Shown: positions 5,083-61,628, numbered from the stretch's first letter. The stretch: 64,000 nt of DNA from Penicillus capitatus (GCA_965649825.1 OZ287704.1:236101-300100), one strand, 5' to 3'. A program made the numbers and translations. The notes: generated from the letters alone by a model not told the origin.

Positions 5083-6863
5083 TTAGGTTCGGAATGTGTA
5101 AGAAGTCGAGGTCGTTACGTATCGCACCCATCGATGGGGATTGTAGCCCCACTCTTTCTTGGCGATGTGTAAGTACTGCAGATTCAGACGGGAAGCACAG
5201 TATGCAGGAATCGTAAATTTGAGATTCACAGGACCCACTTCTCTTCTGACCATAGCGCCAAATGCCTGCAAGAGCACCACGCGTCGCATTTGGCATTGCT
5301 GCTGCCCGGGGACGACACACTTTGTCTAGCGTGGCTCGAATGGCAAGCACGAATTCTTCTCCTCCTTTGAAAGACTTCATCGTCCACACCACCATATGCG
5401 TCTTTTCATTGAAGTCCCACGTATGCCCTGTCGTTTCAGATGCATGAGCGATGGCAGAAAGGGAGACAGTGGAGTGCCTTTGCCAGAAGATTCGCACAAG
5501 ACACGCGACACGCACTTAGGCATGGGCACTTCAACTTCCACCCCATTCGATGCCTTTTCCTTTGGAATCTCGTTAATGATACGGATCTGCACCAACGCCT
5601 GACCCAATGCCATTCTCAATGAAAGAAACTCGGATCGGCGTTGAGACACGAACCTTGAATGGCGATGATTCGTCCTGGTCGATCGTGGTATAGACTTTGA
5701 ATGGGGGTCGGATGCTCGACGTACAACGGTAGTTCATCAGAGCAAACTCGCCGGTAACTGGCGTGAGAGAGATGGATCGTTCGATGTCGAACTGATCCAA
5801 CTGAGCACTCTCATGAAACTGACAATCGTCTAAGACGACTGGATCATCATAGATCCCTCAACACAATCTCACTCTTTCTCACTCTACTCCAAGGTATATT
5901 CCTCACCGTAAGCCTGATGTCCAATGCAGACATTGTCATTGAGCTTGATTTTGACGCAAGGGTTGCCGTGCAGATAGCTGCGGATCTAGATGCCAAGTGT
6001 GATCTGATGTGACGTATGTGTGAGAGTGCGTGATCTCGTTACTTGAATGGCCCCATCGATTTGACCCGTCTGCATGAAGCCGGTGGAGCTGAAGACGCAC
6101 ACCATCTTCTCAATCACGTCGATGAATATCTCTTCTCTTCTCTTTCCATCCGTCCGATCCGTTTCGAGGACAGATTTGAAAAGCCCTGTCGCGCCTTTCT
6201 GCAATCCAAAGGACACATTGCCCTTTACACTCTGTCCAAGACAGCAATGGTGACATCGATGTAATGGCTGGATTGTACGCACCACTGTGGGAGTGACAGG
6301 CGTCGGTTGGCTCAGAATGAAGGATTTGAGTTCATCTGTCGAGGTGATTTGTGGAAAACCGTAGTCCAGAATCTCGTCGATCAGTTCGTAGATGAGAATG
6401 AAATTCTTGCGAATGGCCTCTTCCCCCACCGCCCCACAGTAATCCTGTATCACGCTCTCACACTCTCTCACACTTTTGACGTGACCTTGATGAGCATGGC
6501 AATGCGTTTGAGGAGTTCCATCACCACAGCAGGCGAGATGTTCTCTTTTGTCGTGGCGACGAGGACCACGCCACCCTCCTGCAGAACAGATGGGATGAGA
6601 GACGGAGTTTGTTCGTTCGGCCAGTTGTCGTTGCCTTGAGGTGGACATACGACACTCCATCGACGAGAAAAACTGGCGGCGCTTCGTCATTCTCTTTCCA
6701 GAACCGGAACTTTCGATAGAACACTTCGCTGCTCGTCTGCACCGTACACAGCTTCCAAGCAGCTTCTTATCGACGATGTGCATACCTGCGCTACATTGCC
6801 GAGGAAATCCCGTCGAATAATGACGTCTCCCCTGGGAGAGAGAACGAAGAACTGAGATAACAT
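5083..6863 (-). CDS. AP4M1: AP-4 adaptor complex mu subunit, 8 introns
   Basis: MLSQFFVLSPRGD N-terminus, RKNFILIYELIDEILDYGFPQ, EIFIDVIE, DDCQFHE, and a C-terminal PHRWVRYVTTSTSY. Confidence 0.92.
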
Positions 6864-7116
6864 TCGTGCATGCAGTAGATGATGACGTGCATCCGTTGAT
6901 TAAGCTCGATGCCGCATGACCGCAGTCACGAACGCGATGAGCGTCACCGACAGCGACACAGACGACGCAGCCGAAGTCCATCTTCAAAACGCAAAAAGCA
7001 AGCAACAGAATAGAGGGACAGGCATAACAGCAGAAACGATGTGACAGCAGAGAGGAGGAAGAAGGACTAGATTCGGGAGAGGAGAAAAAACAACGGCTGC
7101 GTGAACGATTGGCAAA

Positions 7117-8185
7117 ATGGAAGAAACGACAAGTGTGACCACACTGAGAAAACCTCGTTACACTTCTCACTCTTTTTGGCAAAGGGCGTCGAAGAAGAGA
7201 CCAAACTCGATGCGCCAACACTGCCACCGTTCGCCTCTCACTCGCGTTCTGCCACACTTGCGATCTCTGCGGATGACAGGACAAAATGTGATGACGAGGA
7301 AAAGAAAGAGGTTTGCGTTCAGGAACTAGAAGTGCGATCGATGTGACGTGCCGATTCAAAAGAGTGAGAATGTGTCTTAGGTGGATGCATTGGACGCTTT
7401 TATGGCGAACGAAGTGATTCCAGAGGTGAGTGCAGCTGCTCAGGCCGTTCAGACGCAGAAAGAGCAAGAGAAGCTCGCCAAAGCCAAATCCCTGGCGGTT
7501 TGTTCTTTCTACTAAACGTCACATCATCTCACTCTCTATCTTACTTTTCACAAAGGCTGGCAAGAAAGTAAAGCGGCCGAAGTTCCTTGACGAATCCGAT
7601 TCGGAGGACGAAGCCAATCTCGAAGTCGAAATACCGACAAACAAAGTCAAACTCGTTGTCGGTCCAAGCGGCGTCAAGATCAGCGAGATCCAAAAGAAAT
7701 CCAAATGCCGCATTCAGATTCAGAAGAAACCCGAAGATCTCAACCGTGCCTTCGGTTCTGGTCCCGAGCCCACCAAACCTCGCGGCACGTCCAGCAACAG
7801 CACGACGACTCTGCTCATCTACGGCGATCCTAAAGGCGTCGCCGTTGCCAAACGTCTGATTGACGAGGCCATCGAGAACAAAGAGCAAAAACGACAGCAG
7901 CGACAGCGGGAGTACGAGAAGAAACGATCGGCCAAGAATCGCGAACGGCAGATCTACCACCTACGTCATGCACGTGACTACGACGTCCTGGGATTGCCGC
8001 TAGGGGCGAGCAAGACCGAAGCGAAGAAGGCCTATCGTAAACTCGCTGTGCAGTTTCATCCAGACAAGTATACCGGAAGCGATAAAGAAGCTGCCCAGCA
8101 ACGATTTCTCGAAATCCAGCGCGCCTATCAGAGTCTGATGTCGACAGATGAGGATCAGCACATTGAGCAATTAGGCACGGCGTGA
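7117..8185 (+). CDS. KH-domain + C-terminal DnaJ-domain protein, 3 introns
   Basis: KH signature LVVGPSGVKISEIQKKSKCRIQI and J-domain YDVLGL...YRKLAVQFHPDK. The TGA at 8183-8185 overlaps the next ATG. The 5' exons are inferred from GT-AG splicing. Confidence 0.82.
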
Positions 8186-11038
8186 TGACCCATGCGCGTC
8201 TGAGAGACACGTTTACATTTCACTTGAGCTGCGACGTCGATTTGCCGTTTCAAGTGCGCATTGTCTCGTGCCACGGCGTCGAGCCGCAGAGGACGAACTC
8301 GGCGCGAGCGTCAGCAGTGTACGTCTGCGCGTGTGTCTGCGATGACGGCGAAATTATCGGCGCTTCGGAACGCACGCGATATTACGATCGAAATCCGTCG
8401 CAATGTGTGATCGACGAGAATCTCATCTTCTGTATGAAGTTTCGAGATTTGCCAGAAACGGCTCAATTGGCCTTTACAGTAAAGACGCGTATGTCATTCA
8501 GAAGTGTGATAGAGTGAGATTAGGTCTATGAACTCCAAGAGACGAATGGAGAGACATTGCTGGGTGGTGCAACGATGCGACTGTTCAACAAACGTGGCAA
8601 ACTGAAAACGGCGGAGCATCATTTGAGATTGTGGTTGGGGAAGAAGCCAGATTTGAAGATCCCATCCAGCACTCCTGGAAAACGTCCCCTGGCGGAACGC
8701 GGAGAACTTGGCCGTCTCGAAAATCTCATGAAAAAATACGCAAGGCACGCATAACTACTCCTCACCGTGTAGAAGATGTCTCTCGTTACAGGGGTGATAT
8801 TCCGAAGCTCGAATGGTTGGACCGAATGGCATTTAAGAGAATTGAGAAGTTACAGAGTGAATTGGGACGTGAGGATCAGAGTGTGAAGCTCACGATTAAG
8901 CTGCCGCTGTTCCATCATGCTGTTCTCTATCAGAGTTCCCCAGTCGATGCCAAGACCAAAGTGACGAGCAAAGGCGTGATCGAAACGAAGGATCCACTCG
9001 AGAATCTCCTCACGATCCCAGATCCGGAGATTGGCCAGGAGAATCCGATCGACAACAAAGCGCAGAAACTGGCTCGAAATTTCAGACGAGGACGGATCGA
9101 TATGGATCTGAAGCCGAACGGTGAAGAGCGGAAGAGACTGACGGCCGTTTTGAAACTGCCTCCCAACAAAACCATCGCCACACAAGACAAAACCATTCTC
9201 TGGCAATTCAGGCAAGCAGAAACATGATCGAACAAGAAACACACGTATGGATGGATTCAGAGGAACGCTTATTTCTGAGAAAGCAGCGCTGACGAAGTTT
9301 CTAAAGAGTGTGGATTGGTCGGATGCGCGAGAAGCCCGAGAGAGCGAAGAACTCATGGAGAAATGGGCGCCGATTGATATCGCCGATGCCTTGGAGCTTC
9401 TCTCGCCAGATTTCAAAAACCAAAGCGTCCGTGCCCATGCCGTGAAAGTACTGGAGCGGGCCGATGACGATGAGTTGCTCTGCTATCTCTTGCAGCTCGT
9501 GCAAGCATTGAGATATGAAGTCGAAGACCACTCGCAACTGGCCACCTTTCTCGCCTCGCGTGCCGCAGCCAATCCCAAACTCGCCTTCTTTTTTCACTGG
9601 TATCGCGTAGTCCCACTGTGTACGAAATACAGACATGTGTGCTGGCGTTGTGTCTAGGTATCTCTTTACTGAGCGAAACGACAGCGCGTTTGGCAATCGT
9701 GTGGCAGAGGTTCACAGTCTGTTTGAGACGAAATTGGAGGCGATGCCCCACGGAGAAATCGTGTGGGGATTTCTGAAAAGACAGAACGAAATGGTGGCGC
9801 AGCTATCGCGTCTCTGGTAACTCTCATTGTTCTTCCCGCCCTCCTCGTTCGACCACCTCTGCCTGTGCTCAGCAAAGAGATGCACGGGGCCAAATGGAGG
9901 GACCGGAACAAAGTGGAGCATCTGCATAAGCTCCTCAGTGATCAAGGCCTCTGTGCAGAGCTCATGTCGCTGAGGGTGCCTCTCCCGATCGCCCCATCCA
10001 TTCTCCTGACGGGTATCGTTCCACAAGAATGCACCGTCTTCAAGAGCAAGCTCTCTCCCCTTAAGCTCACCTTCAAGGCTGAGCCGAACTCTTTGGATTC
10101 CTTCTTCATGCGCACTCCAGGGACGCCCGGTGTCATGAGTCCAGCAGAGAGCCTTGGCAAACAGAGCCAGGCGCTACCTTACTGCATCCAGGACAACAAC
10201 AAATGTGTTTTGATCTTCAAGAAAGGGGACGATTTGCGACAGGATCAGTTTACCGTAGCCATGTTCGATCTAATGGATCGTCTGCTGAAGAAAGAGAATC
10301 TGGATTTAATGCTGACGATTTATCAGGTGCTGCCCACTTCGCCTGACAGCGGATTTGTAGAATTCGTCAATTCGAAAGCGCTGGCGCAGATTCTGGCACA
10401 GCATCGAACCATTCTGAAGTTTCTGGCGCTACATCATCCGGATCCCAGCAATGTACCCTACGGCATCGAGCAGCAGACACTGCAGACATTCGTGCGCAGC
10501 TGTGCTGGGTACTGTGTCATGACCTACATCCTGGGCGTCGGCGATCGACACCTTGACAATCTCATGCTCACGTCTTCTGGTCGTCTCTTTCACATCGACT
10601 TTGGCTACATCCTTGGTCGAGATCCAAAACCGTTTCCGCCTCCGATGAAGATCTGCAACGAAATGGTCACCCATCTCTCTCCTTTCTTTCTACCCTGTCT
10701 GAGGCATGATGGGACGGATGGTTTAGGTGGAGGCTATGGGTACAACGTCGAGTCCTCACTATGAAGATTTCGTAAAGTACTGTTGCGAGGCCTACAACAT
10801 CATCCGGAAGAATTCGAACCTCGTTCTGAGTCTCTTTCATCTCATGGCTGGATCTTCCATCCCAGATATCAGTATGGATCCCGAAAAGGCCATGCTCAAA
10901 ATCCAAGAACGTCTGGAATTGGACCTTGATGATGGCATGGCTGTTCAGAAAATGAAGCATCTCATTAACGAATCGGCCAACGCACTGATGCCGCAGATTA
11001 TGGAGACGACCCACCGATGGGCACAATACTGGAAATGA
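8185..11038 (+). CDS. VPS34: Phosphatidylinositol 3-kinase class III (Vps34), 6 introns
   Basis: C2-region FHLSCDVDLP, helical EKAALTKFL, kinase motifs KKGDDLRQDQ, GVGDRHLDN and HIDFGYILG, and the HRWAQYWK C-terminus. Confidence 0.95.
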
Positions 11039-11082
11039 TGTGACATCTCATCCCTTCCACCCCGCGTCCATCAGGAGGCGTA

Positions 11083-11087
11083 TGTAA
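11083..11087 (+). promoter_or_regulatory. TGTAA poly(A)-signal candidate for VPS34 (and possibly KH-DnaJ)
   Basis: TGTAA 44 nt after the VPS34 stop. TGTAA is the known chlorophyte near-upstream element. Confidence 0.55.
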
Positions 11088-11158
11088 GTCATTCACTTGA
11101 CGTGTCTCCTCTTACTCGAGCGCGTTGTCCCGTAGCGCCTCTTTGTTTACAAAGCAGA

Positions 11159-14013
11159 ATGCGGTGCGGCTGTGTTCCGCGAATTTTTCGACGTCCCAGT
11201 CCGTCGCCGCGGATTTTGACAGAGTCCGTTCCTTCACCATCAGCGACGACAGCGACAGAGCCGAGCCGAAGCAATACACCCCTGCTGACACGCGAGGTCT
11301 GCTCAGAGCGTCTGCCACGTCTATCGTCGTCGTCTTCATTTCTCAAAGAAGAGAGCGACAGTGACGACGGTGGTCCAAATGCGACGCTCTCGGAGGCAAT
11401 CCAGAATGAAGAGGAAGAGAATCACGAGACCTCGTCCCGAGCAGCAGTGGTCGCTTTCGACGATGAAGCGACGGCGAAAGAGAGCAGCGAAGAAAAACCA
11501 TTAGCTGCTATGGGGAATCAACACCACCCCTCATCTGAAAAGAAGTCCTTTACAGCGCGACGCGGAGGGGGTCTCTTTCTTAGAAGCTTCTTCAAGGCGC
11601 CGAATCCGATAGATGATACCACGTCCGTATGGGTCCGTTGCGAATGTCTTGTGGACGATGTGCTCGGGACAGTCCGATTGGTCTTGCGTCTCGAGGAAGA
11701 CTCCGCAAGCGCATTACATCATCGAACGAACAAATCTGGAAGCATTCAGTCACTTTTTCGCATTAGAGGGCGGAAGACGAAGGAGGAGAGTGAGATGACA
11801 GACCTCATCCGAGCACGGCATCCCTCATCAACCTCAGCCAAGACAGGCGATGAAACGGAAGATGAGGAGCAGCAGCAGCCCGTCGATGTGGCACGGCCAA
11901 AAGAGCGATCTGGGTTTTGCTTTGGATGGGGACTGACAGGTGTGAACAATGACGATGACGATGAAGCTATCACGCAGTCGGAGTTCATGACCGAAGCACC
12001 GCCAGGATTGGTGGGACTCATGAATCTAGGCAATACCTGTTTTCTGAATGCGGCCCTGCAATGTCTACGATGCACCCCAGGCTTCGCGACGCTGGTGGTG
12101 CCTGAACTAAGTCAAGGATTTGAAAGTGTGACCAACAATGACACAGGAAAACCGCATTCACAGAACACCATCATCCCTCAACCGCAACACAAGTATCAAG
12201 GACAACAGATAAGACGGACACTAAAGCGACAAAGGAGTCATTCACACAGTCTGAGTTCTTCATTTCCCCGTTCCGTACATCTCGACATGGACTGTAGCGT
12301 CCTGTCGAGGACAAGTTCATTGCCAGATCCATTACCGTATGAGATAGGGAGCCGACTGAAGGGGGAGACGGGGTTGGCCGGAGGATCGGTGCTGAGACTG
12401 TCCAGCGCACCAAACTTGTTGTACAAGGAGGAGGCGGCGTCTGCTGCATCGCCTGCCTCCACGACTGTCGCCGCCGTGTCGTGTCTCGACAAAGAAGTGT
12501 CTTTTCATATCAGCCGTGAGATTCCAGCCATCAAGGATCCAGCTGAAGATCTCAAGTCACTCGATGGAATCCACGATGGTTGTCATTACAAGACCAGCAT
12601 TACACAGCCTATTATTGATAAGCAGGCAGCCGTGGCTAACGAAACAGCTGCCGGAGATCGCGATCACCTCGAAATGACAAGCGGCACTGATGTAGCATTG
12701 TCAGTGCCTTTGGCAAAGAATGACGATACATCGCCGGCATCTGATAAAAAAGAGAGTGAAATAATTGAAGATCGGGGGATAAAGAAAGGGACAGAATCTG
12801 CAGCGAAAACTGCGGAAGTTGAGTTATCTGTGGATTTCATTTCCGCTTTCCAAAAACTGGTCATGGATGTTTGCCTTGGAGAGGCAGAGCATCATCGTAG
12901 CCCACGTGACCTCTACCTTCAGCTCAAGAAACTTCCACAAGGAGAGTGGTTTTGCGATGGCGGCCAGCACGATTGTCAAGAGATCTTCAAGGTGCTGCAC
13001 TGTCCTTCTGTCGCCGCTCAGGTGTGATGTGTGTCCTCTCATGTCGCCGGCAGGTATTGCTGGACGCCATTCATGCCAGTTATGCGGAACAGAGTGTCCA
13101 AACGGAACCGCAGTTTGGGCGATGCATCAGCGATGTCTCTACGACAGAGCGCGATGTCTTACAGGAGATTGAGCTCGAAAACCTCAAAGCCAACAGCCTA
13201 TGGCGGAACTACTTATCCCACGATGCCAGCCCGATCACTGACGTCTTTGCTGGCCAATTACAGATCGTCCGGGTTTGTCAGAAATGCCATTGCCGCAGCA
13301 CCACCTACGAGCCATTTTGGGATCTCTCGCTATCTCTCTCCCGGGAAAGAGTGAGTTGGTTCAATCCTGGACGCATGTCTGGCTCACTGGATGATCTTAT
13401 GCGCGCCTTCACTGCTGCCGAAGTATTGCAAGGAGACGAAGCTCCATACTGCGATTGCTGCGAACAAAAATCTCCAACCACACGGAGAATTCTGATTCAT
13501 CGATTTCCCAAAGTACTGGTGATTAATATCAAACGATTTAAGTACACCAAAGATGGCAGAGAAAAACTCACATCCAACATCACCTTCCCTTCCCGGGCGC
13601 TTCGACTCCACGTAAGAATCGAATCCAACACCGCCGTCGCCGCCAACGCATCTGATAAGATCTTCTTCCCTGTGACAGAACTTTGCATCCAAGGAGCACC
13701 AGCATGAAGGGATTTCAGAGATCTATGACTTGTATGCTGTCAGCAATCATTACGGTACGCTTGGAGGAGGGCACTACACCGCCTTCTGCAAGGTATACCC
13801 TCGACGACGGACCCACCGTGGGGCATCTCTGACAGGAGCAAGCGTGTGCAGGTGAAAGATTCCTGTGGGAAGGATGGATGGTACTCGTTCAATGACAAGA
13901 TTGTGACGAAGATCAGTGAAAACATGGTTGTGACACCGAATGCTTACATTCTCTTTTATGCGATGCGTCTCTCCTCGGAATCTTCTCACACATCCAACAC
14001 AATGCATGCGTGA
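11159..14013 (+). CDS. Ubiquitin-specific protease (peptidase C19), 3 introns
   Basis: Cys box [24 protein letters not shown], and His box [14 protein letters not shown], followed by WYSFND and NAYILFY. The start codon is uncertain. Confidence 0.88.
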
Positions 14014-19042: not shown

Positions 19043-20760
19043 ATGGAAATCGATGCTCCACGCAACGCAGCTGCGGCACAGCACTCGACCGAGCTACGGA
19101 AATGCGAAAACCCCAAAGGAATATTCTTTTTACTGACACTTTTATTCACGTGGACGCTCGTGGACAGAGGTGATGACACGATGTCTCTGGAGGAGTCCTC
19201 CAAGCTGTACTTATTTTCGCAGGCATCATTGCTTCAAACACGATAAACGGCAGCGACGATGACGGGAACTACAACGGAATACGCGTGAGTTCGTTCTTTC
19301 TTCAAGTTGAAGAATCCTTGTCGACTTCTGTTTGCAGGACGACATCGAGATGTCGAACTTCGAAAACGGCCTTCTGTCATCAGCGCTGTCGGCTGGAATC
19401 ATCGCGTGCTCTCTGTTTCTCGCACGAATCGCCTTTCGCTTTCCGCCGATGGTCATCGTGGGCGCCGGACTACTGCTCTGGTGTGTTGCTGCTGCGGCTT
19501 CTGGTCTGGCTAACAGTTTCTATGCACTGTTCACGTGTCGCTTTCTCATGGGCGTGGGCGAGTATCCGATCTTTTCACTCGGATCCATCGTCATCGGTGC
19601 GTGTAGTTATCAGTGCGCAAACAATGCTTACAGAAAGTGTGATGGCAGATGATGTGGCACCGAGTAGGAGTACAGCTTTTTGGCTGGCCGTATTCTACAC
19701 AGCAGGTCCTGTCGGCGTCGCCTGCGGCTTCTTCATCGGTTCAGTACTGGGCAGCAACATGTCATGGCGATACGTCTTCCTCTTTGAAGCGTCCGTTGCT
19801 CTTCCATTCGTCCTATGGTGCTTCGCAACAAAACCTTTCGACATCCAAAGAGATTGCGAGACGTCCAACGGTGCTGTCGCTGAGGGCCAAGAGGCGGTGA
19901 ACGGCGGATCTTCCGCGTGGCGTGACCTGAAACGCCTGATGAAGCATGTGATCTTCGATTTGAGTGTCTCCGGAGATCTGTTGCATTTTGGTTTCCTTAC
20001 CATTTTTGAGTACTGGGGAGGTCGAATCGTTGCAGCGGTTTTCGACAACGATCAGACGGACATCTACTTCGGAGGAGCTGTTGTCATCGGTTGCATCCTT
20101 GGCGGGTTAATTGGCGGCATCGTCCTGGATACCATTGGTGCGTCGTCCTCATAACGATACGCTCCTCATCGATGTACACACTATGTGCAGGATCTTCTGT
20201 CAGGAATGCCCTGTCACTCTCCTGTGTCGCCTGCTTTGTCACAGGAATCATCGTTGTTCCGGCCATCCTCTTGCTGGAAAACTTCTACGTCGCTGTGGCG
20301 TGCATTCTTGTCTGCTTTGCTGTCGCATCACTCCCACAGGTCGATTGTACTCCGGATCAAAGAAACGGTTCACATGTTGTCGTGTGCTCAGGGACCGTTG
20401 GCAGGCGTCGCGTTGTGGACAGTTCCCCTCGACTTACGTCCACTGAGCCGCAATGTCCAAACTGTCCTGGATTACGGAATCGGATCATTTCCAGCTACGG
20501 CTCTCTACGGCCTCGCCGTGGATCTGTTGAAAAAGAACCACAGCGAGGAAACTTCCTTTCGTTATGCGACGGCCGGTGCATGTCTTATCGTGATCTCGGC
20601 AGGGGCGATTCTTCTTCTCGGTGCTTTCATGAGCACCAATGAATCTGACTACAGAGTTCGATCCGGTACAGCGGCTGATGCCGACGTTTCTTCCGCGAAC
20701 TCGGAAAGCGACGAGGAACTGCTTCAACCACCGCTTGAAGACAACTTAGAAGAAGTCTAG
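19043..20760 (+). CDS. Spinster-like MFS transporter, copy 1 (5 introns)
   Basis: VDRGIIASN, NFENGLLSSA, CRFLMGVG, DDVAP...WLAVFY and TVPLDLRPLS motifs, as in plant spinster homologues. The frame is intact after splicing. Confidence 0.85.
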
Positions 20761-22399
20761 ACGTCGCTGCCGATACTATCGTGCATTTTTTGAGCAGTCT
20801 GGGTTGGTACTGCGTAAAACGATCACACGCTTTTCATCGATTCGAACATACAATACTTTCCCCTTCTCCATCATTATTGTTCACTGTTCTTTGCGTTTAT
20901 GTTAGGTTTCGATCACGTTTTTTTACCAACGACGAGATTCATGAGTATGAATATACTCTAAGTAAGATGTCTTTCGGATGCGAGCCTTCTAAGAAAGCAA
21001 GGAGGCTCTAGCTGTCTAGATTGGGTCATTTGTCATGATGGTCATTTCCTTTGACTTCTACACTTCTTACATTCCAATGCATTGCAAGTATCGTAATCTT
21101 AGCCATCTAAATACATCTTACGCTTCTTTTCCTTTCCTAGCAGGAGCATGATGCTCCTGGAGTCGTATCTGTCATTTCAAACATAACCATTTCACTCTCT
21201 AAAGCTTGCCATTTTTCATTCGACTAATATGGGATAGGATTCTCGCGGCATAAAGGACAGAATGCTTTTTGCGCGGACAGACATAGGTTTAGCAGCCGAC
21301 ACAGTTCGGTATTTCGGTATTTCGGTGTTTCCTTTCCTGATCATATCTAGCAATGTATACTTTTCCACGAGGACCTATATCTGACGCAAATGTTAACGAC
21401 GGTTCACGATTCCATGTTTAAACGAGGGATGATGATACGAAACGAGAAAAGACGAAATACTCATGGATTGATTGGACTCAAATGAACCCCATGTCACGGG
21501 CAATGAGCTGCCTGTAAAGCAGAGGGTTTTTATCGAATAGACATCGTCGAGCTTTAGCTGAGCCAAGTCAGAAACAAATGATCTGTTATGTGCGAGGTCT
21601 CTATGTTTGAATTAATAAGGTCAAAACACATCGAGGTATAAAGGTTACCGTACAAACCTCCTCTCGTACAAAACTAATCTGGCAGGGATAATAGTCCAAT
21701 GTTGTTGCTCATCAAGCAAAAATGGCAGCGGTTGGCCTGTCGTGTCATTTTATAACATTTGACATGAATCATTAATTTGTTACCTGAACTCCCCTTTTAA
21801 TCCGTGTTTGCATTTAGCTTGACGAGTCTCTTTCTGCGCTCTTAGCAACTCGCTGGTCGGTAGCATAGCCAACTTGTCATGCGTACGACCGCGGCTGCTG
21901 CACCAGCATTTGACGAACTATGACGCCATATACTGGACGTGTGATACTCGTTACCTCTTCAGAGTGTATGTACCCTTCAATAATCGTTCTTTTCTGTTAC
22001 CTTAACTTCTTACACTTTGGTCTGAAGTTCTTGCTTATCTTTTTGAATGAATGATAGAAAGTCGGATCCATTGTTCGTGTTGCAAGATAAAAAGCTCATT
22101 CTGAAAACGAAAGGTCGACGTTCACATGCATGATACACGTACCTCACACAGGCAAGTGCGTCGGGAGTTTAAGTTTTAACATGTCTAAGCACTCATCGAC
22201 GACACGCTTTTCTGCGAAACAGACCCAGCCGGCCTGCCAAAACGTGCCGCCAAGATTCTGCAAGGAGACTTCGCATCCGGGCATCTTCATCAAGCCTACA
22301 TCATATAAACAAGCTCAACGACGGTATCAACACCTTTCAAGTCTTCCCTGACTCAAACGTGTCCCTGTACCAATGTTCTGAGTAAACTTTATAGGCCAC

Positions 22400-25300
22400 A
22401 ATATAGCTGAAAATTGTCCACGTGGACCACCAGTCGTTGACCAGAATCAAGGCTTTGTGACTAGACGAGCTGTCCTGAGAGAGCTTCAATTACTCTGTAT
22501 GGACTTTTCCAGAATGGGGGAAACTTCTCATCGAGCTATGATGCGTGCAAAGGTATACATATACCCACACCAATTGGCTACAATAGGTACAAACAAAATA
22601 CCTCACGTCCTTTTGTTGCGAATGTTGTCTCTGACACGTCATTCAGTCGACGGCCTTCTTTCTGTGTCGTTTAACTCATCTGTGGATGCTTGGCTTCCAT
22701 CCATGTTGTCCCAAAATATAAGTATGTCGGATAAAGGCCAGTAACTCTATGTTTCGTCCATTCGCTAAAATCTTTCTCAGAGAACTTCTTTGCAAGAGAG
22801 TTTCTTTGGTCCATCAACCATCATGTTTTGTAGTCTTTCTATCAGCTTTTCTCGACACCTCTCACACAAACAATTGTTTGTTATGATGTGCATCTGGCGA
22901 TTAATTACAATTTCGATGTTCTTGACCGATAATGGGTTGTTGGTATTTGGCGAACTAAAACGTGGCTTATCGAACAAAGAGGATCCGTCTTAGGTGCTCA
23001 TAGTCCTCAATCTGTTGGATATTTTTATTCGTATTCTCTCTTTTGGGCTTCGTGCAAAACATTACCAATCATAACCGAGACAGAGAATCCACTAGCCTGC
23101 AAATGTAACGCACTCTAATGGAGCAGCTTAAGTTGGACCGGTGAAATCCATGAAAACGAACTTGCCCACCTTTTCAATATCTGGCAAGTGACCGAGAAGA
23201 ACTGATGGTACTTTTCACTTAAACTGCTGGCAGAACTGGCACATCCGGATATACTCCTCAACCTTACTTCTTTCCACAATATGATCCATCCTTCGTAAGA
23301 GCAAAAGTGTTCCTATGTTGCGTTCCGTACTGTATAATATGGACCTCACATAAGATGTCTTTCGTAATGACGCCAAGACGGCAGCTTGCTTTCCACTGTC
23401 CATCTACAATGGCTTCGATCGTCGCGACAAGAATTCGGGTAGAACATTTGTCTTTCCGGGAACAAAATGAACATTCGGGGAGATGTCGAGTATCTTATCT
23501 TGTCCAAACGGCATTTTCTAAATTAACTGTAGTTATACGAATTGACTAGAGTCTACATAAACGAATTATCTGTAAATAGAGTAACCTTCGCAGCAAACAA
23601 CCAAAGTGTAAATCGTTTCAGTGCACGGACAACGGCTTCTACTTCCAATCTGTTTGACACTTAATGGGCTGTAGCGATACGACTAAAATCCTATTGTGCA
23701 GCACATGACATGTTGTTCTTATGTCGAACAAGCTCCAAGTTCAAACGCACTAGCGTCTACCTCAAGATCCAACTTATCAACGCCAAGTGGATGCACAACC
23801 CTAATCGTATGAGTCTTAAGACGACTTACGAACAGAAACCAATCTTCAGATGTACCAGTCTCCACTGCCTTATGCAGCACTTCGTGGACGCCTCGCCGCA
23901 TCAAAAATGGACGATCTGTGAAAACCGTTCTCTCACTGAACGCCGTTCAGAACGTGTTAATGGATCGGAACGGCCTGCAGACGATTGATTAGATAAAGTT
24001 TTAGCCTTTTGGGGTGACGATGTGGCCTAAGAAAAGAAGCTTCTGCGCAAAGAAATGCATTATCCGGACGAAGCCTCTATCCATCATTTTGGGGTGTCTG
24101 GAACATCGCATGAAAGTTCGACTTGTGCTGCTCTTCCGATAGCGACAGAACTGAAGGTGGAATGAGATGCAAAGTGATTGACTATGTGTGACAAGATTGT
24201 GTGGGAGCTGCAGGCAATCGATCGGCTTCGAGAACTGGAGGAAAAGATCATTCAAGCAGCCGAACAGACGTCGCTCTTCTCGCAGCTCATCCATTGACAA
24301 CCGCGTTGCACATTGTGGATATCTACAGACATGTGAACGAATGCCGATCGACGTTCGTGGCAAATCTCTTTGAACTTGCGAAAACTAGCGATGACCGTTG
24401 CCGCAAAACAGCTCAGAGAAAAGCCTTTGTTTCGATGCTTTTCGCTTGGATGTTTTGTCTTTCAAATCTACCACGATTGGCGGAAGTTATCACACGTGTT
24501 GGTCCACTTCCGCATCTCAAACAGTTGGCATTCTCTCATTCGGCACAGATTTTGAACGTTCCATCTGGATTCGCGTTGATGAAGGCATCATTTCTCTGTT
24601 TCATTCCCCTGGATGCAAATGCTTTTTGACTTGCCTGCTTTGTGTTTGCGAGAAGGAACCGAACACAATCTCCTATTGAAAAGTACCAAATCCACCTCCA
24701 ATCGTTCTTTTCTCAGAGAGTATGTGCTGTCTTTTCCTATTGCGACGAACTAAACAGCAGAGCCGCACTCATCGCTCCGATATTCGATGGCAGTCAAAAA
24801 GCAGAAAATCCCGCTGCTGCTTGAAAGTATGGCCAACGCTCTGCCATTGATGCACATTAATGGACAGATTCGATAGGAGCCTAAAAAGTTGATGGATTGC
24901 TGAAGGTCTCAGGTTTCGTCTATGGCAAGGGACATTTCGAAAGCAAGAGTCTCGCGTTCGTAACCTTGTTTGGCGTTTTGAGATCGTCTTGTGTTTGGGC
25001 CATCATTCCTTGTGTCGTGGATGACACATCGCGATACGGCGTCGATCGATGACGCTTCACTGCTTCGCGCTTCTACGTCTAACCCATCTTCCGCGTGATT
25101 CGATGCCTGGTGTTTCGAACGGTTTCTTCGTAGCAGTCGAGTCCCACAGGTGTCACTGAAACGCGCAAAGAAACGTCGCGTTCTCAAATTCCCGTTCCTG
25201 TTTCTTCAACACATCAGTTCCTTCAATCTCTCCATCGTTTTCCCTACCGTCCTGCAATTGGCAACAGGTATAGCCATAATGTGCTTGCTTTCAAAAAAGA

Positions 25301-26100
25301 GAGTCCTGTGAACGGACAACGATCGCATCGATCTCTGTCGTGGTAGATTATGCGCAAGTCTTCCACGATATGTTTCTGTACATAGCTAGCGCTAACCGAT
25401 CGCTCATCATTCGATAAAAAAGCTACAGCAAATCTGATAGATTTGATTCACCGGTCCGAAAGCAACGCGCATTTTCTTAAGAAGTGTGCTCTAACAAACA
25501 TCCGCTTCACAATCGGCGAGCAGTTCTGTTTGCTCTTTCGTTTGCTAGCTACAGGCTCATACAGCCGGCGATAGGGATGTATCAACCAACGAACCCTACT
25601 TACGATCCATTCGTAAGAGTATCTATAATCCCACGGGAAATTCCGGTATCAATAAAGTACTCAGGTCCTTTGTGTTTCCTGGGATTGTCTGAGGTTTTTC
25701 GTGAGGTGCTAAGAATCTCACTCTCCTTTGAGTGCGACCAACGAATCAATGTCGCACTGTCGGTCGTCGCCGATCAAGAAGACGGGTCGAGAATCTTTCG
25801 ATTAACGATAGCATTGTGATTGATTCCCATGTCTTCAAATCTTATAACACATTCCGCTGAACCGCTTTTCAGTGCGACGTTTCCGCGACGGTCGACGTTG
25901 ATCGGTTTTCCGACAATGTTGATTGTGGCTATCTCTCTCCCAACTTCAATAAACGTCAATCGCAACATAATACCATCGAAAACGCAAATATCGATCGAGC
26001 AATCAATCATGTTCGATGTCGATCCGTCCGATAAGATGTTTCGTTCTTGATCTTGGCTCTCTAACGATATTAAACAGATAATAGAGATGTTAGAAAACGT
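22400..26100 (-). mobile_element. Decayed Ty3/Gypsy LTR-retrotransposon pol region (protease-RT-RNaseH-integrase order)
   Basis: Minus-strand remnants: IDCS protease-like motif near 26000, PDGTFKICAE* near 24570 (RT), KLLFLGHIVTPKG near 24010, LEVDASAFELGA and EAVVRALKRF...TLFTDN (RNase H), CQFCQQFK and FMDFTGP (integrase), and FWKSPYRV near 22500. Multiple stops and frameshifts. The ends are approximate. Confidence 0.8.
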
Positions 26101-27429
26101 GTTAGCTTTTTAAAGCTTTCGGAGAATCCATTTGCGTAGCATTTTTCTTAGCTCCCTACAAGCGATCAGTCCAACGCCAGGTCATTCTTTTCTGGTTCCG
26201 CGATTCTCGAAGACATTTGATCAATGACCAACATGATGTAGCACATTGTGCGTCAACACAAGCCACGGCATATAATAGGGATAGCACGATAACGTAAAGG
26301 CGTTTCCACTGTATAATGTGTGTCTCGAACCTTGCGTCACCTTGCACAACTGACAAGTGCGTTCTACAACCGAGAGGCACAAGTTCCAACCATCAAACAG
26401 TTAGTTAGTTCCAAAAATGGTCGATTTTACAAGGATGGAGATGTTCTAAAAACCGAGCGTAATATTCTCTTCCTTGCGGAAATACACTTTAAAGAACCAA
26501 GGTAGTATTATTACATCAAACATGAACAGGTTTTCTGCATCAACGTTTTCATTCAAATCTTCTTAGCTTCGATGTCTTAATAGATCGCTTTGCGGAACAA
26601 CTCTCGGGCAGGACAGCCAAAGTGGATCGATCTATTAGTCTTCTCAAAGCTCAGTCCCTCAACTTCGATCATTTATCGCCTTTATTTCAATCACAAAAAT
26701 GCTTCGATATTACTTAAAAAATCTTTACAAGACACAGGAGAAAAGTGTTCATAGAACTAAGGTTCTCTAGCGCACATATCACTACATTATAACTAACTAA
26801 CTAACCAACCGTTTGTTTTACGGTGAACGCCAATGCCAACCAAGTCACTAACACTTTCGACTAGCATGCTACACAAGCATTCGGATTGTTTTGTTTGTAG
26901 CTTTCTGTCACACGATCTGTTCGTCGATCTTGGGTTTGGCGATTTATGCTATGGCGCCGAATTGGTGCTTTACAAGAAGACGGATGTTACAATCATAACA
27001 GGGCTATGAATATTATTATACCACAAGCTTCCACTACGTTTATTTTCCATATCCAAACAGTTTAGTGATAATAAAGAATTCAAAAATTAGCCCTTTCTCC
27101 AAAAATTCCGATATCAAAATTGACCAAACACTATCAAATCAACACTTCTGAGCCACGAAAATGAGCACGTTTACGGTCGCGATAAACTAAAAGTGATCTA
27201 TCTGCCCGCAGTCCGGATTCGTCTTCTGTCACACTGAAATTAACATTTTTCTGTTTTTTGGCAACATTTTGAGTGATGTGGGTCTGATGGGGTCTCAATC
27301 ACAGAAGGAGAAAAGACTGTTCGATAGTCCGATCGATCAGAGTCGATCATAATGCAATCGTAAATGTTGTTTCCTATCTGTCGCACTGTCGACGGACAAC
27401 GGGTAACGACGAAGGCTTATAGGTTACAA

Positions 27430-29300
27430 AGATTGTTGAATCTATTACAATCCGGATTATATACGCGTCGAACGTACGCAAACGTCACATCAACGCGTCT
27501 CCGTCGTCAGCTGCACGAAGGTGGACAGCTGTTCACTGACACTATCTTCCTTTCGATGCTCACAGTACCGCACCACCTAGATGTCATTTTCTTTGACCAT
27601 TTTTATGTAGAGTTCCATATCCACATCAATTTGCCTTGCTTTAAGTCGCTCTTTGGAAGATTCTCTCTGCGGGTGCATTGGTTTCGAAAGTTCACGTTTT
27701 GATCCACAGCATTCCATCGTCGGGCTAGAACTGTCGGCAGTCGCATTAAGCCGGACTGACGATTTCTGCTTTCTGAGGCAGATTGACAGACACCCTCGTT
27801 CGCGACCACCGAAGCAATTCTCTCTAGTCTTGGACGGTGTCCATCAGCATGTCGCTGGTTGATATTTGTGTGACTCGGTGTAAAGCAGTACAAGGTTGCA
27901 TTTCAATCTCAGGCAAAAGAGAAGCCCATCGATCCTCGGCTGAGCATCATCTTCTCAGCCTTTAAAAAATTTTTGATTTATGCGTTCACAATCTTTATTG
28001 CACTGTTAACTATAGTCAGGGATTTCACGGCGTCGAATTTTCTGTTCAGTGAGCCATTCGGTCAGATGCCGGGAAGTCAGAGGTCTTGAGTTATCACGGA
28101 TAATATAAGTCGGGAAGCCAAACTGCCTAGACCATCGATCGAGAGCCCGACTCACTGCCAAACTAGACGTCTCTGTGCAGACAATCGGCATCGGATGCCT
28201 CGTATACAGGTCAATTGCCACTAAGATGTATCGCTGTCGTCCGGCCTTTAGCATCGGTCCAATGAAGTCAACAGCCAATGCTCCATTGAACTCCATTCGG
28301 GTCTTGACGGGTTTGGTTGTATAGCTTATTCTTTTGTAGGCGTTGTTGGCAAACGACACATGTTGCCACATGGCTCCGAATATCCTGTCTGAGTTCAGGG
28401 TCAATACGCAAACTCTTGTGCTATTCTTTGTCTTCTAAGATCACTACGGGCCGAGCCCAGGACTCCTTTTTCCCCTCGAATGAAGGAACAAACATCGATA
28501 TCAATCAGGCCTTTTACGTGGACAGTCCCATCTCTAAGGTCCATAGCCGGAGTTACACCGACAGGGTCACCCGTACACGATTGTTAACCGACCTTGGGGT
28601 GATTGATCTGAATGCCACAGAAAGCCATTCTCGTCGTCAAATATCTTAGGACACCGGATTTATTTTCTTTTTTCCTCTTTAAGAAGTTTGCATGAAAGAT
28701 TAAATTCGAAGAAACGAGATATAAGGAGAAAAATGGCACACGAAAAAAAATGCGCCCGAACACAAAAAACTAGAATTTAAATGACAGTCATTGTCAGACG
28801 TTAATCCCGCACCATAAGGACCAGCTAACCTTTCATCGTCGACGGAAACTGCTAGAACAGTTGTATAGAGATCAGAAAATCAAATAGCTACAATGCACCG
28901 TAAGATGATAAACACAGTATACTTTGGTAAAGAAACATCCTTTAATCTGATTCGTCTTAAGAGAACCTTTGATGCAAACAATGGCAGCTTATTTGTCGTG
29001 GTCAAGAACACAATGATTCTCATCGAAAACAAGAAAGTATGCCTGTCTCTCCTCTTGCCTGACTTTTGGATGTTCATAGTCGTCAATGAAGGTGAGATCG
29101 TAACTACATTTGAACACCAACAGAACCCCAATTGGCCAGCAGCTCCGGTCACATCGTTTCGTCAGACTCTTGAGATAACATACGAGATGGTGTGAGATGA
29201 TATGTTCGGTTCGGTCAATCTCTAAAATGAAACCGATGGATGCGTGTGAATTTTGAGGCTTCATGACGATAACAGCATCGTGCATCTAAATGGTCGAATG
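27430..29300 (-). mobile_element. Second decayed Ty3/Gypsy pol fragment (RNaseH remnant + integrase)
   Basis: Integrase core LAVDFIGP...YILVAIDLYTR...FGFPTYIIRDN in ORF 28006-28404, and KMTSRWCGTV resembling the integrase C-terminal motif near 27570. The ends are approximate. Confidence 0.8.
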
Positions 29301-29492
29301 ATTAGTTACGGAGCCATTATCCTCGACAGCATTGGAAGTTGTTCGACAGTGATGACACGTGCTTTTTAACGAGAACCATATAAGACTGCCAATTGCGCAT
29401 TTTTCCGCCATACCTTCGTTGTTTTTTTACAGAACTCTTCCTTCGTAATTACAGCATAGATAAGTCGGCAACACTCGTCTGTTAGTAAACAA

Positions 29493-31171
29493 ATGGAAAC
29501 CACCGCTTCTCGAGAGAGGCCTGAGGGACAGCGCTCGAGCAGGCTACGAAAATGCGATAAGCCGAGAAGAATCTTCTTTCTGTTGACACTTTTATTTATG
29601 TGGATGCTTGTGGACAGAGGTACGGATGTGACAGCTCCACAATCTTCTAAGGCGTACTTGTTTTCGCAGGCATCATTGCTTCAAACACGATAAACGGCAG
29701 CGACGATGACGGGAACTACAACGGAATACGCGTGAGTTCGTTCTTTCTTCAAGTTGAAGAATCCTTGTCGACTTCTGTTTGCAGGACGACATCGAGATGT
29801 CGAACTTCGAAAACGGCCTTCTGTCATCAGCGCTGTCGGCTGGAATCATCGCGTGCTCTCTGTTTCTCGCACGAATCGCCTTTCGCTTTCCGCCGATGGT
29901 CATCGTAGGCGCCGGACTACTGCTCTGGTGTGTTGCTGCTGCGGCTTCTGGTCTGGCTAACAGTTTCTATGCACTGTTCACGTGTCGCTTTCTCATGGGC
30001 GTGGGCGAGTATCCGATCTTTTCACTCGGATCCATCGTCATCGGTGCGTGTAGATACCAGTGCGCAAACAATGCTTACAGAAAATGTGATGACAGATGAT
30101 GTGGCACCCAGGAGCAGTACAACTTGTTGGCTGGCCATATTCTACACAGCAGGTCCTGTCGGCGTCGCCTGCGGCTTCTTCCTCGGTTCGGTACTGGGCA
30201 GCAACATGTCATGGCGATACGTCTTCCTCTTTGAAGCGTCAGTTGCTCTTCCTTTCGTCCTATGGTGCTTCGTAACAAAACCTTTCGACATCCAAAGAGA
30301 TTGCGAGACGTCCAACGGTGCTGTCGCTGAGGGCCAAGGGGCGGAAAACGGTGGATCTTCCGTGTGGCGTGACCTGAAACGCCTGCTGAAACATGTCGTC
30401 TATGATTTGAGTATATCAGGAGAACTCTTGCAGTTCGCCTTCCTCACTCTTTGCGAATACTGGGGAGGTCGAATGGCTGCAGCAGTTTTCAACAGCAATC
30501 AATCGGATATCGTCTTTGGAGCAGTAATCGTCGTCGGTTGTATCATTGGTGGGGTGCTCGGCGGTGTCATTCTGGATGCTATCGGTAATTCCCATGACAA
30601 TACGCTCCTGATCGATGCGTGTTTTTTTCTGTAGGATCTTCTGTCAGGAATGCCCTGTTGCTCTCCAGTGTTGCCTGCTTTGCCACTGGAATTGTCCTGG
30701 CGCCAGCGATCCTCTTGTTGGAAGATCTCTACGTGTTTATGCTTTGTTTACTGATCTGTTTTGTTGTCGTCTCACTAACTCAGGTGAAACCTTGTCTTTG
30801 CTAAAAGATTTATCCACATATCGTCGTGCGTTCAGGGCCCCTTGGCAGGAGTGACGTTGTGGACAGTTCCCCTCGACTTACGTCCACTGAGCCGCAATGT
30901 TCAAGCTGTTCTTGAGTATGGAATCGGGTCACTTCCAGCTCCGGCTCTCTACGGTCTCGCCGTGGATCTGTTGAAAAAGAACCACAGCGAGGAAACTTCC
31001 TTTCGTTATGCGACGGCCGGAGCTTGTCTTATCGTGATCTCTGCAGGGGCGATCCTCCTTCTCGGCACCTACGTAAGTACAGATAAATCGGACTACAGAA
31101 TTCGATCCGACACAACAGCTGACGCTATCGTCATCTGTGATGGTTCTCTCAGGCAACAAGATGGCGGGTGA
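29493..31171 (+). CDS. Spinster-like MFS transporter, copy 2 (5 introns)
   Basis: Same exon/intron structure and motifs as 19043-20760. The frame appears intact. Confidence 0.85.
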
Positions 31172-31343
31172 TCCACGTTTGATAACGATCTAGACTCAGG
31201 CATTATTTCTCTTCGCTAGCAGACATCGTTTCGAACACTGAACTAGTATTGCCGTGATAGATCAGCCGATTTTCATTGACCGAGGATAGTTTTTTTTTTA
31301 ATTTTGTGCAATCGGCTTGCAGTTATATTGTTGGTTAGCTACT

Positions 31344-32103
31344 TCAATGGAGGACTGTCATTCTGCCTTGCAGCGAACGAATGGTATAATACTGTACATG
31401 TATTGGAATCAGTTTTGGTAGATCAAGTCTCCAAGAAGAAACGGGGTGTTTATTGATGTTTGGAACGAAGCGTTCGTCAATGACGTTCATTTCTTCGGCC
31501 ACTTGCACTCCATGTATTCTGTCTGTTTTTGTTGCTAACACTTCTGACTCTCTGTACTCATTTGATCTTGCGTCAATCTTGCTAGTCTGTTTGCGCTAAG
31601 AGTCTTTTCTGCATTTGCAACCGTAACCATCTTTCATTCGTAGAACCCAGAATTCCTTTTCGATGAATAATAGATGCCGATGGCAGATGTGAAAGAATAA
31701 AGGATTTCTCTAAGAAGGCATACATTATCGACACTTTGCGTTCGCTTTGCACATATTTTGGCATTTTTTCGTTATCATTGAGATCTTTGTTTATCATTTC
31801 TACCAATGTGCCATTTTCCACGGGAGTTTTCTCAACGCTATCATAAGTCCTCGATCGCAAGAGAGCAATAAATATGGTCTTTACGATCGATGACTATTCA
31901 GAGAAAGAGAATGAAACTCGAGGGGCCACACTGAAAGGACGGACATGCTGGCCAAAACAAATGAGTTGTTGAGTAATACTCCCCATACATCTGTTGCTTA
32001 GAGTCATTAAATGCGGCCCAGTGAACAATAAGTGTTCGATCGCTATCGATCCTCGAAACGTCTTGTCGCGCGTTTGAGGTCGGCTGCCGAACGCACGGCG
32101 CAT
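31344..32103 (-). CDS. Putative orphan gene (at least 3 exons), unknown function
   Basis: Three ORFs (31894-32103, 31582-31860, 31344-31541) join in frame through two canonical short GT-AG introns (about 31894-31944 and 31582-31627). I recognise no homology. Confidence 0.4.
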
Positions 32104-61040: not shown

Positions 61041-61628
61041 ATGGACGACCATAAACTCCGACTGCGCTTCGAAAACGGACTGAGCACTTCGCGAGGGGAG
61101 AATGCCGTGCGACGCGTGTACAAGAGAGTCAGGGCAATGCTCAGCAGCTCGTCCCCCGAAGAGCGCCTCGATGCCGCACACGGGCTGCTACGCGACCAAG
61201 AGACGCTGAGAGAACAGCTGCTCGTTCAGCAGTTTCGAGCTCAAAAATTCGCAAAACGTCGCGTCGAGGGCACAACAGAAAACGTAGAAAAGCGCCGCAT
61301 CGATCTCGAAGCCGAACTGGAAGAACGACGTAACACGTATCACGATTTGAAAACACGTTTTCCCAAGACCGAGACAAAAGGGCGACAAGAATCGCGTGAC
61401 CTCCTGCTGCCTGCCTCGACATGCGAAACGCAACTGGCTCAGCTGCGAAAGAGAGAAGAAGAACTCGACCGTCTGATTCATCAACAGCGTCGAGATTTTG
61501 AAAAGTGGAAAGAAATGGCCGTCCTTGTGGAGGACGTCCTGCGTGAACTGCCATCGACGGAGGACCTCCAGACCAAATCCAAATCAACCGACTCACCCGC
61601 AAGCGATGTCGAACCGAGAATAAAGTAA
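61041..61628 (+). CDS. Coiled-coil protein resembling THO complex subunit 7
   Basis: N-terminal KLRLRF...SRGENAVRRVYKRV resembles plant THO7 (RGEPPLKKLQKKF), followed by a coiled coil. An in-frame ATG also occurs at 60987. Confidence 0.5.
   Translation: MDDHKLRLRFENGLSTSRGENAVRRVYKRVRAMLSSSSPEERLDAAHGLLRDQETLREQLLVQQFRAQKFAKRRVEGTTENVEKRRIDLEAELEERRNTYHDLKTRFPKTETKGRQESRDLLLPASTCETQLAQLRKREEELDRLIHQQRRDFEKWKEMAVLVEDVLRELPSTEDLQTKSKSTDSPASDVEPRIK

Follow-up and report, generated by a model that had tools for sequence, protein, structure and literature searches.

A one-nucleotide stop/start overlap between a KH-DnaJ gene and VPS34 in a compacted siphonous-alga genome

A 64,000-nucleotide stretch of the Penicillus capitatus assembly (GCA_965649825.1, OZ287704.1:236101-300100; hereafter the window, with positions counted from its first letter) carries on its plus strand two large conserved genes that have no intergenic space between them. 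The upstream gene encodes a protein with a KH domain and a DnaJ (J) domain (KH-DnaJ; open reading frame 1, ORF1), and the downstream gene encodes Vps34, the class III phosphatidylinositol 3-kinase (PI3-kinase; ORF2). The two share a single base, 8185, within the pentamer TGATG (8183-8187), the KH-DnaJ stop codon occupying 8183-8185 and the Vps34 start codon 8185-8187. [quoted passage not shown] Loss of the spacer leaves KH-DnaJ without a 3'-end signal of its own before Vps34, and Vps34 without noncoding DNA upstream. The explanation that we favour, with about even confidence, is that KH-DnaJ and Vps34 are overlapping transcription units, with the Vps34 transcription start site (TSS) in the final exon of KH-DnaJ and with KH-DnaJ RNA that continues through Vps34. 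The ends of the transcripts, and the identity of the RNA that is translated, we infer from genomic sequence; comparison of related loci adds weight to the view that this gene arrangement is genuine, long-standing and tolerated.

Both reading frames were followed through the junction by frame translation. TGA 8183-8185 closes the KH-DnaJ frame (...SLMSTDEDQHIEQLGTA), and ATG 8185-8187 opens that of Vps34 (MTHARLRDTFTFHLSCDVDLP). The Vps34 reading frame contains an in-frame TGA (8164-8166, plus strand) seven codons 5' of the ATG, so that ATG 8185 is the sole in-frame start possible within this exon; the earlier claim, made from the sequence alone, that no other ATG precedes the conserved Vps34 N-terminal motif is thereby upheld. 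The C-terminus of KH-DnaJ, EQLGTA*, agrees with that of its homologues, every inspected one of which stops 1-4 residues past EQ[LI]G or its counterpart, indicating that the stop at 8183 is ancestral. On the other side of the junction, M[TSA]HARLRDTFTF is the Vps34 N-terminus in six of six related loci (the window and those designated L009, L005, L003, L006 and L012), and Vps34 homologues start 9-14 residues ahead of FTF[HY]LSCD, the same as in the window model.

With both termini backed by homology and the overlap recurring in independent assemblies, the TGATG junction reported by the sequence-only reading stands at these positions. An identical junction is present in an independent 1.6-Mb contig (L009, ENA ERZ26696514), which is colinear with the window across 18.5 kb at 87.5% identity, and two further assemblies (L005 and L003) have equivalent tight junctions. 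In the face of these observations, and of the agreement of both protein ends with homologues, the chance that the overlap is false, through faulty sequencing, faulty assembly or a wrongly modelled exon, is negligible. A sequencing error or an unrecognised exon that moves either codon, which had been foreseen as one way in which the overlap might fail, is excluded by the homologues and the independent assemblies.

The KH-DnaJ gene (6909-8185, plus strand; 1,047 nt, 348 amino acids) was modelled with five exons (6909-6997, 7048-7132, 7185-7310, 7381-7497 and 7556-8185), in agreement with homologue matches; its introns measure 50-70 nt and the first is of the GC-AG type. The N-terminus, MPHDRSHER..., parallels that of homologue P0121 (MPHDRHRR), which places the start at ATG 6909; the start at 7117 assumed in the sequence-only reading lies in the wrong frame. 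At position -3 of the KH-DnaJ start there is a T in the window, a C in L003 and a G in L007, and these few starts give no genome-specific consensus. Pfam domains KH_1 (residues 161-242) and DnaJ (281-337) were found, and the protein shows the traits of its family, namely an N-terminal basic/acidic region, a DALDAFM motif, a KH domain and a C-terminal J domain that ends the protein. The family is widespread in green algae, with 143 homologues at E <= 1e-5, and the best matches have the same architecture.

Vps34 (8185-11038, plus strand; 2,538 nt, 845 amino acids) has seven exons (8185-8478, 8524-8744, 8792-9211, 9261-9599, 9658-9816, 9873-10665 and 10727-11038) separated by introns of 45-61 nt, of which introns 2 and 3 are GC-AG. 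The protein is 60% identical to Vps34 of Bryopsis sp. over 100% of its length and 58% identical to that of Ostreobium, and contains the PI3K_C2, PI3Ka and PI3_PI4_kinase domains that characterize a class III PI3-kinase. Three of the ten introns of KH-DnaJ and Vps34 (6998-7047, 8745-8791 and 9212-9260) are GC-AG, an unusually high share; their donors read AG/GCAAGC, AG/GCACGC and AG/GCAAGC (exon/intron), the exon joins are backed by protein homology, and the GC donors are kept in L009.

Related loci were retrieved by means of the KH-DnaJ and Vps34 exon-1 proteins, and the junction was found in several states. L009 carries TGATG at 9999-10003, with the same 1-nt overlap as the window. In L005 (JGI metagenome) the KH-DnaJ frame ends in ...AAA AAA TGA and the ATG lies one base earlier (ATGA), giving a 4-nt overlap, and in L003 (Logan SRR33785045) the stop codon TAA is followed by 17 nt and the ATG. 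Spaced junctions are present in L006 (ENA metagenome), where TAA is followed by 114 nt and ATG, with the pentamer TGTAA 39 nt past the stop, and in L012 (Tara metagenome), where TGA is followed by 157 nt and ATG, with TGTAA 62 nt past the stop. The L007 contig stops 220 nt past the KH-DnaJ stop, short of any Vps34. A check for TGATG in related algae had been proposed by the sequence-only reading: the pentamer is conserved in L009 and gives way to ATGA in L005 and to a 17-nt spacer in L003, but it does not extend to the spaced L006 and L012 or to the Bryopsis, Ostreobium and Caulerpa-like loci, in which the adjacency itself is absent. Spaced and tight states coexist in lineages that are ~75-83% identical in KH-DnaJ.

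Adjacency of KH-DnaJ and Vps34 is specific to one clade, in which the genes either meet with essentially no spacer or are separated by a short one that contains TGTAA. In the Bryopsis and Ostreobium loci KH-DnaJ and Vps34 are not linked. A Caulerpa-like contig (L004) contains KH-DnaJ, TGTAA at +70, a minus-strand gene and the gene for a ubiquitin C-terminal hydrolase (UCH), with no trace of Vps34; the minus-strand gene (L004 1888-3181) fills the slot of Vps34 in an order of KH-DnaJ, UCH and RING genes that is otherwise syntenic. Vps34 has thus either been inserted into, or removed from, the slot between KH-DnaJ and UCH. The best protein matches of both KH-DnaJ and Vps34 are from Bryopsidales, and the GC content of the window is ~50%, which sets it apart from Caulerpa lentillifera with its 40% (PMC6476727); the window clade belongs to siphonous (Bryopsidales-related) green algae. 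In a KH-DnaJ tree the window clusters with several metagenomic and other assemblies, and this cluster is sister to the Caulerpa-like pair. The tree was rejected as a guide to whether the tight or the spaced state is ancestral: neighbour joining nests the spaced lineage among tight ones, but with bootstrap values of 6-24%. The metagenomic L007 (1-2590) is without all the KH-DnaJ introns of the window and without AP-mu introns (see below) in the part covered, and represents either an intron-poor species or a cDNA-derived contig.

Compaction in this genome extends beyond the KH-DnaJ/Vps34 junction. Spacers were counted solely where they are bounded by conserved protein ends. A raw scan for stop/ATG proximity was dominated by fortuitous ORFs and by introns in which a GTGAGA-type donor contains a stop, and spacers of 22-27 nt (divergent and convergent) given by an ORF caller in L015 were dropped, as the called termini disagree with conserved protein ends. 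Upstream of KH-DnaJ lies a divergent gene for the mu subunit of an adaptor protein (AP) complex (AP-mu), for which Pfam Adap_comp_sub is present in orthologous loci. Its start codon (6861-6863, minus strand; reverse complement MLSQFFVLSPRGDVIIRRDF) is 45 nt from the KH-DnaJ ATG (spacer 6864-6908), and the corresponding ATG-ATG distances are 49 nt in L009, 62 nt in L003 and 5 nt in L007 (1382-1386). Downstream of Vps34, the next tandem gene is UCH (11159-14013, plus strand), with an N-terminus conserved in L003 and L004 and with Pfam UCH found in orthologous loci. Its ATG is 120 nt past the Vps34 stop, which provides a 'normal' tandem spacing for comparison; Vps34-UCH spacers measure 120, 121 and 123 nt, all with TGTAA, which in L003 ends 17 nt ahead of the UCH ATG. 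A further tandem pair is formed by eIF3e (59701-60984, stop 60982-60984) and a conserved coiled-coil gene to which no function is assigned (61041-61628, 195 amino acids), with a spacer of 56 nt in the window and of 54 and 69 nt in L013 and L015, respectively. This coiled-coil gene is real, its start (MDDHK) being confirmed by four homologues. There is no TGTAA in the eIF3e/coiled-coil spacers of the window and L013, and in L015 TGTAA overlaps the eIF3e stop.

Very short spacers, as expected of a compacted genome, are thus found in divergent and tandem pairs alike. Since divergent genes cannot share an RNA, ATGs only 5-62 nt apart imply that core promoters lie inside neighbouring coding sequence and that leaders are very short. 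Upstream ATGs within the short spacers, three between AP-mu and KH-DnaJ and two between eIF3e and the coiled-coil gene, also point to very short leaders, and L006 and L012 have upstream ATGs 15-18 nt before the Vps34 ATG. The surrounding compaction makes the TGATG overlap less surprising than it would be in isolation. The Vps34-UCH spacer of the window (11039-11158, 120 nt) is 92% identical to that of L009, a value like that of exons, the introns being 53-84% identical; conservation at the level of exons implies that this spacer is packed with function, and it carries TGTAA (11083) and a TGACGTG motif. On a second contig of the same ENA assembly (L014, 1-2308), the eIF3e/coiled-coil region stands beside an ORF of a non-LTR (long terminal repeat) retrotransposon (Exo_endo_phos_2, RVT_1); the contig could represent either a haplotype or a duplicate into which a retroelement has inserted.

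The distribution of TGTAA was analyzed as an indication of where transcripts may end. Plus-strand copies of TGTAA are located at 6260 and 11083, with none between. The latter copy (11083-11087), 45 nt past the Vps34 stop, is the candidate polyadenylation (poly(A)) signal of Vps34 and of any read-through KH-DnaJ RNA; it is kept in L009 (12897), and the Vps34-UCH spacer of L003 also has TGTAA (5657). All three KH-DnaJ orthologues that are followed by a spacer (L006, L012 and L004) have TGTAA 39-70 nt past the stop, a placement that makes its use as a poly(A) signal plausible, in line with other chlorophytes. As a 3'-end signal it is neither universal nor sufficient: UCH (stop 14011-14013) has no TGTAA before the next gene, L009 contains TGT AAC inside a Vps34 coding exon, and L003 contains TGTAA in a Vps34 intron. 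No TGTAA was found in the remaining 2.5 kb of the L005 contig, which ends inside Vps34. The possibility that TGTAA in spacers represents a GTAA-type intron donor was rejected, as L003 leaves no room for an intron. TGTAA is scarce on both strands of the window, with 26 copies on the plus strand and 53 on the minus strand versus ~63 expected on each; the TGTAA-free run from 6909 to 11083 is what would be expected of any sense-strand gene pair, and absence from a zero-length spacer is trivial. The statement in the sequence-only reading that no TGTAA occurs between 7117 and 11083 is therefore true for the plus strand, but weak as evidence, considering the general depletion on sense strands, the lack of TGTAA after UCH and the exonic copy in L009. 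What the zero spacer does imply is that any 3' end of KH-DnaJ RNA lies downstream of the Vps34 ATG, so that KH-DnaJ transcripts must include the Vps34 start and, most simply, all of Vps34.

The region preceding the junction was searched for elements that could promote reinitiation, and no dedicated element was found. Synonymous codon identity over the last 60-100 KH-DnaJ codons was 0.26-0.41 in three tight lineages, not above that of the rest of the exon (six orthologues). RNAalifold analysis of four tight loci gave a consensus of -5.97 kcal/mol with 16 pairs and no conserved structure, and the fold of the window junction showed no extra stability versus shuffled sequences (z = +0.60). The motif TGGGA (UGGGA in RNA), characteristic of a termination upstream ribosome-binding site (TURBS), was absent from 8025-8185, i.e. 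from the ~160 nt before the junction, in a motif scan that did not score complementarity to the organism's own 18S rRNA; the nearest TGGGA is ~190 nt upstream, where it forms part of LGLP codons, and L003 and L005 do not share it. Counted per 90 nt toward the junction, the synonymous differences that separate the window from L009 numbered 7, 5, 8, 8, 9, 5 and 3.

If KH-DnaJ and Vps34 are overlapping transcription units, RNA polymerase II would initiate Vps34 transcripts within the last KH-DnaJ exon. The likely TSS interval would extend no more than ~35 nt from the Vps34 ATG, past the last upstream ATG at 8149, resulting in a very short leader. KH-DnaJ transcripts, being unable to end before Vps34, would continue into it, probably through to the TGTAA at 11083. 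A two-ORF RNA would probably exist, yet most Vps34 protein would be made from the shorter RNA, and some reinitiation at the overlapping AUG may contribute Vps34 as well. An internal Vps34 promoter is favoured because the compaction of the neighbourhood makes promoters inside adjacent genes the rule. Overlapping units, moreover, need no special RNA element, and none was seen. In the spaced relatives L006 and L012, Vps34 presumably has its own promoter, located mostly inside the KH-DnaJ 3' coding region; with the promoter already internal, a switch between spaced and tight states would be easy. A precedent is provided by compact microsporidia, in which transcripts begin within the preceding gene or end within the following one and 5' untranslated regions (UTRs) are among the shortest known (PMC3629993).

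Several observations weigh against overlapping units. No promoter motif was identified for Vps34: TGACGT is present upstream of KH-DnaJ and UCH and absent upstream of Vps34, and its 36 sites in the window versus ~31 expected represent no enrichment. Protein searches returned no RNA-derived (intron-free, full-length) Vps34 or KH-DnaJ from the clade, all related loci either having introns or being metagenomic DNA. Nonsense-mediated decay should readily affect a KH-DnaJ mRNA whose stop is followed by six Vps34 introns and a 3' region of 2.5 kb, unless ORF2 is also translated. The tight junctions (-4, -1, -1 and +17 nt) are all within the range of post-termination reinitiation, and in four of four tight loci the first AUG from the KH-DnaJ stop onward is that of Vps34. 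The window and L009 show just 2 differences in 8123-8201, where ~6-7 would be expected, a weak hint of constraint that was noticed post hoc. Finally, in Chlamydomonas a stop codon followed by 6-10 nt and ATG, after ORFs of up to 654 codons, suffices for expression of a second cistron (PMC5144980).

The principal alternative is an obligate bicistron, in which a single RNA would be transcribed from a promoter upstream of 6909 and polyadenylated after 11083, and a fraction of 40S subunits would reinitiate at the overlapping AUG after UGA 8183-8185. Leaky scanning as a means of reaching the second ORF is excluded by the 13 ATG triplets that follow the start codon in the spliced KH-DnaJ ORF, several of them with a purine at -3; the argument had been made earlier from a count of about 10, which was too low, and it holds with the corrected number. 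For reinitiation speaks the persistence of the overlap or near-overlap in four assemblies, representing at least three lineages with saturated synonymous sites, together with the position of the Vps34 AUG, always the first one from the end of ORF1 onward. No space is left for a KH-DnaJ 3' end: the window is TGTAA-free until past Vps34, L005 has none in 2.5 kb, and the earlier copies in L003 (Vps34 intron) and L009 (Vps34 coding exon) lie inside Vps34, while the KH-DnaJ orthologues with a spacer all bear TGTAA 39-70 nt beyond the stop. Green algae use polycistronic nuclear mRNAs (PMC7896298), Chlamydomonas can express a second cistron after long ORFs via short unstructured junctions (PMC5144980), and translation of ORF2 would shield the read-through RNA from nonsense-mediated decay. 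On the other hand, the locus is unlike all characterised green-algal ones, which have a short ORF1, AUG depletion and leaky scanning, whereas here ORF1 has 1,047 nt and 13 ATGs. Reinitiation is inefficient after long ORFs, while Vps34 is essential; no conserved sequence or structure precedes the junction; and the relatives with TGTAA-bearing spacers of 114-157 nt show that Vps34 can be expressed alone from this position. The compaction is genome-wide and includes divergent pairs that cannot be bicistronic, which offers a simpler common explanation. The obligate bicistron is thus retained as a tentative alternative, and it appears doubtful that Vps34 of this clade lacks a promoter of its own and is made solely by reinitiation after a 348-codon ORF. 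Termination-reinitiation on a bicistron and a hidden Vps34 promoter, the pair put forward by the sequence-only reading, are still the two leading explanations, but the bicistron that it placed first is not the better supported of the two, in view of the compaction and of the lack of an element. A two-ORF RNA probably exists under both, and they are not exclusive.

Two other mechanisms were considered. A promoter shared by both genes could be combined with RNA processing, a Vps34-only mRNA arising via a cis- or trans-spliced leader exon joined near the ATG, or via cleavage. Acceptor-like AGs do occur 9-13 nt before the Vps34 ATG (TTAG/G in the window and L009, TTAG/A in L005 and AAAG/C in L003), the spaced relatives have the acceptor-like sequences TTTTAG and TTTCCAG, and in the window joining the donor of KH-DnaJ exon 1 (6997/6998) to 8174/8175 would preserve the Vps34 frame. 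In L003, however, the same splice would not keep the frame, spans of 6-8 nt often contain an AG by chance, and the acceptor pattern was spotted post hoc; no donor or leader exon was identified, and a scan of the 64 kb of the Rfam type gave no match to a spliced-leader RNA family. We know of no spliced-leader trans-splicing in green algae. Processing of this kind is improbable. Still less credible is the production of a single fusion protein by -1 ribosomal frameshifting or by bypass of the stop codon. In four of four tight loci (window, L009, L003 and L005) the Vps34 frame is -1 with respect to that of KH-DnaJ, and in L005 an A-run (GAT AAA AAA TGA) coincides with the junction. Yet the window contains no slippery heptamer, the stop in the Vps34 frame at 8164-8166 leaves 18 nt for the shift, the spacer of L003 has 17 nt and is unconserved, and no downstream stimulatory structure was seen. 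Both proteins, moreover, have normal conserved termini and are encoded by separate unlinked genes in Bryopsis, Ostreobium and the Caulerpa-like alga. The frameshift fusion and the exon-1-to-junction splice were both rejected, as each suits one species and fails in another.

The locus was compared to known systems in which two ORFs lie in close proximity. Viral termination-reinitiation is represented by the TURBS of caliciviruses, the UAAUG of influenza B M1/BM2 and the AUGA of victoriviruses with its upstream pseudoknot, and depends on an upstream element, either a UGGGA motif complementary to 18S rRNA with its associated structure, or a pseudoknot. The KH-DnaJ/Vps34 junction resembles these cases in having an overlapping stop and start (UGAUG, AUGA) between two long ORFs, with termination and restart in close proximity, but it lacks a conserved upstream motif, structure or synonymous constraint. 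In plants, CDC26/TTM3 is a conserved two-ORF nuclear transcript of Viridiplantae, in which the upstream ORF is tiny and leaky scanning suffices; it is not comparable to the 348-codon ORF1 described here. The bicistronic loci of green algae (Gallaher et al. 2021, PMC7896298; a 2025 PNAS follow-up, PMC11892635) are recognised by full-length transcripts that always and solely cover both ORFs, with a single promoter mark and a single poly(A) tail. In these loci ORF1 has a median length of 444-600 nt, ORF2 of ~850-880 nt, and the median inter-ORF distance is 212-260 nt; ORF1 has a weak Kozak context, AUGs are depleted before ORF2, and leaky scanning has been shown experimentally (PMC11892635, PMC7896298). 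As in those loci (PMC7896298), the two ORFs are nuclear, on the same strand, in different frames and a very short distance apart, without an intervening poly(A) motif. By contrast, AUG depletion and small ORFs are not found here: ORF1 has 1,047 nt with 13 ATGs, ORF2 has 2,538 nt, and the two overlap by 1 nt.

Bicistronic vectors of Chlamydomonas (Onishi and Pringle 2016; PMC5144980) provide a closer parallel in their long ORF1 and few-nt junction, and their spacing matches the -4 to +17 nt observed here. Expression of ORF2 from these vectors is less efficient and presumably relies on reinitiation after termination. Unlike the vectors, which are engineered and under drug selection, this is a natural locus encoding an essential kinase, with a predicted mode of expression. 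In microsporidia and nucleomorphs (Williams et al. 2005, cited by PMC3629993 and PMC6009652), spacers are of tens of nt or fewer, transcripts begin in the upstream gene or finish in the downstream one, and leaders are very short. Those genomes are parasite or endosymbiont-derived, whereas here the genome is the nuclear one of a free green alga, and the complete loss of a spacer, with a nucleotide shared by two large conserved genes, is an extreme case. By analogy, the KH-DnaJ/Vps34 locus would behave most like the overlapping expression of compacted genomes.

Elsewhere in the window, a stretch from ~21000 to 32000 has a GC content of 0.42-0.46 and few long ORFs, and contains a fragment of a retroviral-type integrase core (28009-28404, minus strand). 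ORFs for transporters of the major facilitator superfamily (MFS) are present at both of its edges (19285-20760 and 29930-30631). These features suggest a degraded retroelement insertion and/or a local duplication. The 64-kb window contains no tRNA genes and no Rfam family at threshold.

The junctions of the relatives (157, 114, 17, -1 and -4 nt) constitute a ready natural experiment on the loss of a tandem spacer, and the locus carries a warning for annotation, as gene finders that demand intergenic space mis-model such pairs. If reinitiation after the long ORF1 operates at the overlap, Vps34 would be made in a natural cellular setting by a mechanism otherwise known chiefly from RNA viruses and from engineered algal vectors; green algae would then have a second route to polycistrony besides leaky scanning, one perhaps used by many gene pairs of these ultra-compact genomes. 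If KH-DnaJ and Vps34 are instead overlapping transcription units, the coding sequence of a conserved J domain would contain a promoter and a TSS, and KH-DnaJ would lack a terminator of its own; this would show how far the nuclear genome of a free-living alga can compress its regulatory DNA.

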